26,405 bases of DNA. Source: Bugula neritina. Taxonomy: Eukaryota > Animalia > Bryozoa. The DNA is taken from assembly GCA_964035545.1 (NCBI GenBank), contig CAXIUT010000050.1, forward strand, positions 1 through 26,405, given 5' to 3'. The notes beneath the pieces are model-generated. The model saw nothing but the letters and a program-made list of their open reading frames with translations. It ran no database searches and was not told where the DNA came from. This document shows, piece after piece, positions 13,040 to 14,956 of the stretch (position 1 is its first letter; each line of letters starts with the position of its first letter). A program made the position numbers and the translations under genes.

Positions 13040-14956
13040 ATGGCTAGAACCAAACAAACTGCTCGTTTGTGTGCACAAGTAATTGCAAGGAGGAGTGCTC
13101 CCCTCACTACTGGAGTTAAAAAGCCTCAAGCTAAAAGAAAAAAAGGTAAAGGAAGAGCTAGGTCAGTTTCATCATCATCTTCTGAATCTGCTATTGATGT
13201 GACTCGTCAACAATTCAGTCTCAAGTTTGACAACCAACCTGAATGTTAAAAGAAAGCTATCAAACAAGCCCTCTTTGAGTGTAAAACTTGCAAAGCCTAT
13301 TTAAACTGTCATAGTTAACTCCAGAAAATAGAAGATAAGGCTCCACTTGAAATCAAAAGATCTCGTTCAAAAGGAGAAATGAGTGACGAGAAAAAACAAG
13401 AGATTAAAGCTCATGAATCCTGCCTCTGGGTTTGTTAATATTGTGATACTAAAAATGAAGTACCAAAAAATATTGATATTCCCAAAGAAGAAAACCCCTG
13501 CTACTTTGTAGAGAAGGCGAATAAAGGAAAGATAAAAGGTGGAAAAGAATAGAAAGGATAAAAAACTATTTTCTATGTGATTGATATTAGTGGAAGCATG
13601 GATACTCTATTCGAAGGAAAGTCAAGATTGTAGGCAGTGAAGTAAGCTATCAGGGATTAGATAAAAAGGATGAAATTCTAAGGATAAAATGTTAAAGTAG
13701 GAATTATTACTTTTGGATCTGCTGTAACAATCAGATTAAACTCAAAAGATATACAAATGCCTCCTAATCTCTTCTATGGTTTCTAGCAACTTGCTAAGCA
13801 TGCTAGTGAACTCGGTGAAGTGACTCTTCCAGTTCAAACTCATCATAAATTCTTTGAAAAAATGCTTAAATAAATGACCACTTATGGATGCACAGCTTTA
13901 GGACCAGCCTTAGTTACCTCAATCGAACTTGCTGGACGTCAAAGAGGTTCAAAAATAATATTTTGTACAGATGGATAAGCTAATGTTGGCCTTCTTGGTC
14001 CTGACTTTTATACAAAAGCTGCAGCTTTTGCCAAAGATAAAGGAGTCATGGTTAGCATTTTGAGTATCAAGGGAGATAGATGCAATTTAAAATAATTGGG
14101 AAAGTTGACCCTATCTACTGGAGGAAGTATAATGAAAATTGATCCAAATTTACTAGGAAGTGAATTCAACAAAATATCAAAAGAAAATGTGTTTGGTACT
14201 GACAGTAACCTTAGAATAGTTGTAAACCACTTTTTTGAGATAGAAAATGCCCATCCTGAATAAATTTCAAAAGATAAAACTTTACTAACTCAAGATTTTG
14301 GGAATTTTACAGCTGACACATAGCTGACTTTTAATTTCAGAGTATTGACAAATGAAGAAGCAGCAAGAAAAGGTGTAAGCATGGAAATTATTAAAAAAAA
14401 GAGATTGCCTATGCAAGTACAACTAACATACACCAATCCAAATGGTTAAAGATATTTACAAGTAGTTAATGACCACAGAGAACTCACCTTAAATACCAAT
14501 GATTTACTGAATGATACTAACTTTCCTCTGTTTGCTGCTTCTACTTTGCAAAAAGTTAGTCAGCTGATTAAAGACTAAAACTTTGGACAGGCTGAAGCTT
14601 AGATTAGGAGATATAGAAGTATGGTTGATTAAACTTTTTCTAAAAAAGAGACCAAAGACTAACTTTTAAAATATAATGCAAGAATAGATAAAATAGAGAA
14701 GGTGCTAAACTCTAAAAAAGGTAAAAAAAATAGAAAAGGTGGTATTCTCAAGCAAAAAGGATCCTTAAAGAAGAAGAAAACAACTATGATAGCTAAACCA
14801 TCTATCCCTGCAAGAGGGCGAGGACGAGGACGAGGAAAAGTTTAAGCCTCCTAAAATGAATCAGAGTGTAGTGAGGACGAAGAAGATGAATAAATACTCA
14901 TGGAGAGTGACTCCTAAGAGCAAATTCTCTTCAAATAATTGCGTGCTCGTTCCTGA
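13040..14956 (+). CDS. Histone H3-tail-like N-terminus + Sec23/24-type Zn finger + vWA domain protein, 638 aa, intronless
   Basis: [23 protein letters not shown], then CKTCKAYLN..WVCEYC, then MIDAS elements VIDISGSM, TALGPAL and IIFCTDGEANVG. The C-terminus has a basic patch, RGRGRGRG and an acidic tail. One frame runs to TGA 14954-14956. Confidence 0.9.

Follow-up and report, generated by a model that had tools for sequence, protein, structure and literature searches.

The protein encoded at positions 13040 to 14956 of the window (the whole 26,405-nucleotide stretch of DNA that was analyzed) belongs to a family of ciliate proteins that carry a genuine histone H3 N-terminal tail on a non-histone scaffold. 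The initial annotation had proposed such a protein, and the proposal holds: no histone fold is present, and the tail is conserved in orthologues. Judged from the alignments described below, the gene joins the 5′ part of a histone H3 coding sequence to a zinc-ribbon/vWA scaffold. We estimate a probability of roughly 55% that its product mimics the N-terminus of H3 and docks to modules that bind the H3 tail, acting either as an adaptor or as an H3 competitor at the chromatin machinery.

The gene and its macronuclear chromosome

The window constitutes the whole of contig C59 (26.4 kb) in a mixed assembly of 216 Mb and 321 contigs. The contig starts with (CCCCAA)n and finishes with (TTGGGG)n. Given that C4A2/G4T2 telomeres are present at both ends, C59 is a complete 26.4-kb ciliate macronuclear chromosome. 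Within the left telomere, 15 non-telomeric bases (gtttgggaaatgaa...) lie at about positions 70 to 84, between two telomere tracts. The multi-megabase contigs of the assembly carry canonical histone arrays that are free of in-frame UAR codons, and the window DNA does not occur in them. Therefore, they represent another organism, the host, and the ciliate is a passenger.

TAA or TAG codons occur at conserved Glu positions in the ciliate’s H3-variant genes on C136 and C51 (ALR-E-IRKYQ, LY-E-DTNLC, and ALQ-E-A), and the TAA and TAG codons of the window gene align opposite GAA and GAG in its orthologues. The ciliate reads UAA and UAG as Glu (NCBI table 30), and the initial annotation was correct to translate the gene in this manner. 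This reading of UAR codons is so far known from peritrichs. Considering the genetic code, the telomeres, and the intron size, the source ciliate is most likely a peritrich. Each of the H3-variant genes contains one 20-nt GTA...AG intron, and the tails that they encode (MTRTKQTAKKTAPRN... and MPRSKAVAKK...) are less canonical than the tail of the vWA protein. A canonical ciliate H3 was not found in the assembly, whose ciliate part may be incomplete.

The open reading frame on the forward strand comprises a single exon of 638 codons for amino acids (with UAR read as Glu), including 26 UAR codons, ends with TGA, and is among the longest TGA-delimited frames of the window. No Met besides M1 occurs ahead of the first CxxC, and the part of the open frame upstream of position 13040 is devoid of ATG. 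Thus, the H3-like block forms the N-terminus of the protein. With the H3 gene of the host taken as the canonical reference, H3 residues 1–8 are matched exactly and a second block is identical to H3 25–38 at 11/14 positions, precisely as had been claimed for both segments. The other elements listed at that time, namely KRKKGK, CxxC...CxxC, a vWA domain with an intact MIDAS, a basic patch, RGRGRGRG, and an acidic tail, are likewise all found in the translation (Table 1).

Table 1. Positions of the gene’s features in the window, and of related elements at other loci
Feature	Position	Strand	Remarks
C4A2/G4T2 telomeres	1..141 and 26327..26405		
11-mer AAAAGAGATAT	13028..13038	+	1 nt before ATG; occurs once in window; shared with orthologue loci
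Start codon and H3 residues 1–8 (M-ARTKQTAR)	13040..13066	+	Same in 10/10 full-length orthologues
Rest of H3-derived tail, with H3 9–19 deleted	13067..13126	+	Long-form orthologues; 23% mean identity
Basic cluster KRKKGKGR (NLS-like) and Ser-rich linker	13127..13201	+	18% identity; pN/pS 0.6–0.9
Segment QQFSLKFDNQPEC directly before zinc ribbon	13208..13246	+	67% mean identity; pN/pS 0.04–0.13
Split 4-Cys Sec23/Sec24-type zinc ribbon with ~47-aa insert	13280..13444	+	C81, C84 ... C132, C135
vWA domain (Sec23/24-trunk-like) with complete MIDAS	13562..14137	+	D182-x-S184-x-S186, T285, D311
β-sandwich-like region, including conserved PMQVQLTY...G..YLQV	14138..14488	+	pN/pS 0.07–0.18
Helical region	14489..14719	+	42% identity; no Pfam match
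Basic patch and RG repeat (RGRGRGRG)	14720..14848	+	Low complexity; variable sequence
Acidic tail, C-terminal motif, and TGA	14849..14956	+	SDSEE-(I/V)L-aromatic-(K/R)E(L/M)RAR
AAAAGAGATAT in orthologues	L019 3988–3998; L023 3989–3999; L024 1214–1224; L044 2950–2960; L048 739–749		
Ciliate H3-variant genes	C136 (L018 770–1196); C51 (L016 761–1215); C43 (L017)		

The H3-like tail runs straight into the Ser-rich linker and the zinc ribbon. A search with the histone-fold profile PF00125 gave 48 matches in the whole assembly and none on C59, in agreement with the earlier reading that no histone fold follows the tail. The linker keeps its composition across orthologues, but not its sequence. At the other end of the protein, the acidic tail closes with SDSEEQILFKELRARS, and the C-terminal motif is found in 9/10 full-length orthologues as well as in L043, L050, and L051.

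Pfam profiles were scored only on the stop-free pieces between UAR codons. On such pieces, VWA_2 (PF13519) reaches 30.1 bits (cut-off 27) at 13574–13741 and 33.1 bits on the orthologue L040 (1433–1615), and zf-Sec23_Sec24 (PF04810) reaches 18.5 bits on a short piece of the window and 33.5 bits (cut-off 25) on L043 (169–534). Sec23_trunk, matched in separate pieces, scores 26.4 bits for its N-terminal part (cut-off 27) and 15.6–17.7 bits for its C-terminal part, and Sec23_BS (PF08033) matches orthologous pieces weakly (18.3 and 14.4 bits; cut-off 33.5). When the genome was searched with the Sec23_trunk profile (PF04811), no match was obtained on C59, and the true ciliate Sec23/24 gene was matched on contig C151. 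All four zinc-ribbon Cys residues (4/4) are invariant across the aligned orthologues, and the five MIDAS residues, which lie in the motifs DISGSMD...TALGP...CTDG of the window protein, are invariant in 10 orthologues.

Structural comparisons were also made. The nearest named cluster in the ESM Atlas is a ciliate cluster carrying Sec23_trunk. An AlphaFold model of a 179-aa piece has a pLDDT of 50, and all Foldseek matches obtained with this model are vWA domains, including those of Sec24 and Sec23, with the longest alignments being to Sec24; these matches support a vWA fold and no finer placement. A sequence search of the PDB returned nothing significant (best match SEC23, E = 0.39). On the basis of profile matches and conserved residues, the scaffold can be assigned to the Sec23/24 superfamily, with the order zinc ribbon, MIDAS-bearing vWA domain, β-sandwich-like region, and helices.

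The β-sandwich-like region is the most constrained large region of the gene. Beyond the helices lie ~80 low-complexity residues (basic/RG, then acidic), which leave no room for a gelsolin domain, and Pfam gave no match to one. The Sec23-type scaffold described in the initial annotation is thus upheld for the zinc ribbon and the vWA domain, whereas the tie to trafficking that came with it is weak, given the missing gelsolin domain, the intact MIDAS, and the nuclear look of the basic/RG segments.

Other ciliate VWA_2 matches, on C66, C127, and C232, were considered as paralogues and rejected, since they have VIT-vWA or other architectures. Those at C66 91316–91633 and 99818–100135 and at C127 1879–2190 (L052, L053, and L055) belong to large ciliate VIT-like/vWA proteins of 880–940 aa with ubiquitin-like C-terminal parts, which have no relationship to the H3-tail family. 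The two genes on C66 are inverted relative to each other and lie ~8 kb apart.

When the 216-Mb assembly was scanned for MARTKQTAR with a degenerate DNA pattern, only eight host H3 genes and the window gene matched, and the reversed control gave 0 matches. The match of the window gene is not due to chance. Similarly, the chimeric join near position 13130 that the initial annotation had raised as a concern does not exist: Logan contigs of four public runs from three studies, all of unknown library type, cross this position unbroken, with no joint and no indel. No RNA runs holding the locus were found.

Conservation and origin of the H3-like tail

Two independent routes, one starting from the N-terminus and the other from a core segment, led to ~24 distinct orthologues. 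With a 69-aa N-terminal query, 13 fragments were retrieved from assemblies in ENA and Logan, each beginning with MARTKQTA; a core alignment and a 55-aa piece of the core brought up further loci. The library search with the 55-aa core piece gave only five fragments and no annotated full-length protein. Because the core searches used no tail sequence, they provide an unbiased test of tail conservation. The core-found loci with an H3-like start are L026, L027, L038, L040, L044, L047, L048, and L049, plus the frameshifted L046 and L051; three core-found loci are cut by contig ends. Every orthologue with an intact 5′ end begins with MARTKQT.

Among codons 2–9 of 14 DNA sequences, Ala, Arg, and Thr are each written with four different codons, Gln with three, and Lys with two, each position using 2–4 synonymous codons, and the single replacement is A7 to S at one locus. 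One more change in the tag, R8 to Q, is present among the protein-only fragments. K4 is retained in 24/24 N-termini examined, with M-A-R-T-K found in the window and in all 24. Codon 10 is hypervariable (L, F, Y, K, or C). In ten sequences, identity is 100% for residues 1–9, 23% for residues 10–29, and 18% for residues 30–54. Between the window gene and three full-length orthologues, pS is ~0.8 (saturated synonymous sites), and whole-gene pN/pS is 0.30–0.36. This distribution of changes argues that H3(1–8) is the unit under selection and that residues 10–54 drift freely.

Five orthologues carry a long form of the tail that is colinear with H3 1–35, with 25–28 of 40 residues identical. Thus, the tail comes from an H3 gene and is homologous to H3 rather than convergent. 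L027 retains KAPRKHLATRA.RK, and L026 also retains an H3-like stretch. The short form in the window has an 11-residue deletion of H3 9–19, and its LCAQVI sequence corresponds to H3 20–25. Comparison with the long-form orthologues therefore overturns the initial view of LCAQVI as a linker replacing H3 9–24, because these residues are homologous to H3 and not foreign. In run X2, a second contig shares only the gene start (window 13028–13060) and continues MARTKQT-SRKSCAQKVP. From this sequence, the contig can be attributed to another, related ciliate found alongside, whose long-form tail has retained K9.

Position 9 is K in L026, L038, L048, L049, L051, and the second species of run X2, and is F, Y, L, or C elsewhere. 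ARKS, which includes K27, is kept in at least five orthologues (P0001, P0006, P0008, P0009, and P0012), and the K36/K37 block is unrecognizable in most orthologues. The initial annotation had envisaged a tail designed to keep K4 and K36 while avoiding K9 and K27. This idea is not borne out for the family, since many orthologues still have K9 or ARKS, whereas the K36 block is decaying. By the same evidence, only the first of the two H3 blocks (residues 1–8) shows the conservation among orthologues that had been looked for in both, whereas the second, with K36/K37, is degenerate in most lineages. The abridged state, in which K9 and K27 are lost and K36 is retained, is specific to the lineage of the window, because strict constraint covers only residues 1–8, including K4.

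One orthologue, represented by L027 (123–1991) and L028 (Logan SRR27476766 and SRR27476764), comes from a very AT-rich ciliate in which UAR encodes Gln, as seen from TAA at Q5 of MARTKQ and TAG at the conserved Q of PMQIQLTY. Therefore, the family spans ciliates with two genetic codes. The frame of this orthologue is closed by TAA TAA TAA, ~45 nt short of a contig end that is A-rich, and is without the C-terminal tail; context-dependent stops may account for this ending, and the contigs may be transcripts.

Several orthologous loci have peculiarities of their own. An in-frame ATG occurs by chance upstream of the gene in L024, L040, and L044, and its use would bury Ala1. Frameshifts are present in the metagenomic loci L046 (2966–4831) and L051 (4–140). 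In L046, an in-frame TGA additionally falls within the early part of the tail. These irregularities could be assembly errors, pseudogenes, or cases of TGA read as sense. The orthologue in L026 has 39 UAR codons in 675, and a 608-aa class-I tRNA-synthetase ORF adjoining it (L026 3090–4916) is called without any UAA or UAG. A NatA auxiliary-subunit gene adjoins two orthologues and is absent from the window.

Conservation of the family at the protein level sets in exactly at the Met of MARTKQ. The 11-mer AAAAGAGATAT occupies the matching position, ending 1 base ahead of the ATG, both in the window and at the loci L019–25, L044, L046, and L048 (seven species). In L040 and L047, it is inverted and located 25–60 nt upstream of the ATG, and it is absent from the ciliate H3-variant loci. 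The sequence ATATCT is often paired with it upstream. The 11-mer is probably a 5′ UTR or promoter element, and the pairing suggests a conserved hairpin in the 5′ UTR, or a promoter element, specific to the H3-tail/vWA gene.

Possible functions of the tag

We favor the interpretation that the tag docks to H3-tail-binding modules. Under the MetAP rule, an initiator Met is removable before a small second residue, and its removal here would expose Ala1-Arg2-Thr3-Lys4-Gln5-Thr6-Ala7-Arg8. PHD fingers, WDR5- or RbAp48-type WD40 proteins, and H3K4 enzymes are examples of modules for the free H3 N-terminus that could then bind the exposed tag and might methylate it at K4. Residues 1–8 are the footprint of such binders, T3 enzymes among them. 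Ala1 might instead be N-acetylated, which would block PHD-type recognition. The eight-residue tag fits many different H3 binders, and the choice among them is correspondingly wide.

A second partner would be held by the MIDAS vWA scaffold and the acidic C-terminal motif. With the MIDAS invariant and the C-terminal motif conserved, this second interaction may well depend on metal, and it would make the protein either an adaptor or a competitor. Judging by its basic and RG segments, the protein is predicted to be nuclear.

It is also conceivable, if rather improbable, that the tail functions as an import or chaperone ticket for an importin-4/Kap123-type pathway, which might lead to one of the ciliate's two nuclei. 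H3 tails are well established as NLSs, the long forms of the family keep K14-x-P-R-K18 and K23-like residues, and a basic cluster directly follows the tail. However, that cluster, which is of the KRKKGK type, could itself be the NLS. Moreover, only residues 1–8 are invariant, and import is weakened as an explanation because the region of K14, K18, and K23 has been lost from the short form in the window and from many orthologues.

Similarly doubtful is a role as a pseudo-substrate or decoy that inhibits or titrates an H3-tail enzyme, which could be an H3K4 methyltransferase or demethylase, a T3 kinase, or a micronuclear clipping protease. A precedent exists in the SNAG domain, which occupies the active site of LSD1. 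In favor of this role, residues 1–8, including T3, K4, and R8, are exact and invariant. Furthermore, the first six residues of H3 are known to be clipped in Tetrahymena micronuclei (PMC13198579). The sequence offers nothing to separate a decoy from an adaptor, but the large and strongly conserved scaffold, with its MIDAS and C-terminal motif, suggests more than a tethered inhibitor peptide.

A more elaborate version of the docking interpretation, to which we give comparably little credence, is that the H3(1–8) tag sits on a coat-like adaptor and is written and read by chromatin enzymes through K4 methylation or T3 phosphorylation, thereby switching the partners of the MIDAS scaffold. If true, the tag would couple chromatin state, or the distinction between macronucleus and micronucleus, to a process outside the nucleosome. 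The histone code would then have, in this protein, a client outside nucleosomes that is conserved among ciliate lineages with different genetic codes.

Finally, an artifact or dead relic (chimera, mis-called start, tiny intron, or untranslated H3 fragment) is essentially excluded as the source of the H3-like start: although the assembly mixes two organisms, the ciliate has 20-nt introns, and a 21-nt GT...AG stretch overlaps LCAQVI, the region is bridged by the independent contigs noted above, the same architecture recurs in >20 sequences from unrelated samples, the zinc ribbon is preceded by no Met except M1, residues 1–9 are under codon-level selection, and the 21-nt candidate was rejected as an intron because it is without the GTA...AT-rich form of verified introns and because LCAQ is kept as protein, with different codons, in L019.

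Comparison with known systems

Our literature search found no description of an architecture that combines an H3 tail with a zinc ribbon and a vWA domain. The scaffold has closer parallels. The window protein has a zinc ribbon, a vWA domain with a trunk-like match close to the cut-off, a region that matches the β-sandwich weakly, and helices, in the order known from Sec23 and Sec24. Unlike these proteins, it has no gelsolin domain, carries a ~47-aa insert in the zinc ribbon, and bears H3-like, basic/RG, and acidic tails. In addition, the true ciliate Sec23/24 gene resides elsewhere (C151), and the MIDAS of the window family is intact and invariant, whereas COPII subunits are not known to have a complete, invariant MIDAS.

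Proteins related to CPRas's C-terminal half are described as having a 4-Cys finger upstream of a VWA domain, the latter being labeled a Sec23/24 trunk by Pfam; they form uncharacterized paralogous families in Tetrahymena and Paramecium and also have members in Dictyostelium (PMC2430557). When compared by description only, their architecture matches that of the window protein, and no H3-like N-terminus is mentioned for them in that report. The H3-tail family could also reveal the role of these uncharacterized protist zinc-finger/VWA proteins.

In comparison with histone H3 itself, the N-terminal residues are identical and the long forms are colinear to residue ~35, but these residues precede a vWA protein without a histone fold. 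The H3 variants of the ciliate (MTRTKQTAKK... and MPRSKAVAKK...) have N-termini that are less canonical than that of this non-histone protein.

Internal histone mimics, such as the automethylated ARKT of G9a, the ARSK of influenza NS1, and the mimic motifs of SetDB1, engage histone readers and writers. These proteins copy ARKS/T sequences around K9 or K27 at internal or C-terminal sites. In contrast, the ciliate family copies the extreme N-terminus of H3, and its equivalents of K9 and K27 are not conserved. To our knowledge, histone mimics described so far are short convergent motifs, mostly viral or known only in vitro.

A close parallel is provided by the human H3 N-terminal mimicry proteins (H3TMs, e.g., VRK1; Chen et al. 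2021), which follow the rule of Met removal, carry R2 and K4, and bind PHD and Tudor H3K4me3 readers in vitro, and which in unmethylated form bind NuRD in vitro (PMC8166343). The window protein fits the H3TM rules of that study in having R2, K4, and an initiator Met that is predicted to be removed, and is thus a predicted mimic. However, the human H3TMs share only a loose x-R-x-K pattern and are convergent, whereas members of the ciliate family have eight identical residues, are colinear with H3 over as many as ~35, and derive their tail from an H3 gene. The tag is also fixed throughout the ciliate family. Human H3TMs bind H3K4 readers and NuRD in vitro with a far weaker resemblance to H3.

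The ciliate family would thus exemplify endogenous histone-tail mimicry that arose from a captured, real H3 tail. Fixation of the tag through saturating synonymous divergence is strong genetic evidence that a free H3 N-terminus functions away from the nucleosome. With its first eight residues unchanged across deeply diverged species but for the two changes A7 to S and R8 to Q, the H3-tail/vWA family provides a natural example, open to direct testing, of a histone-tail mimic that is part of the protein itself.
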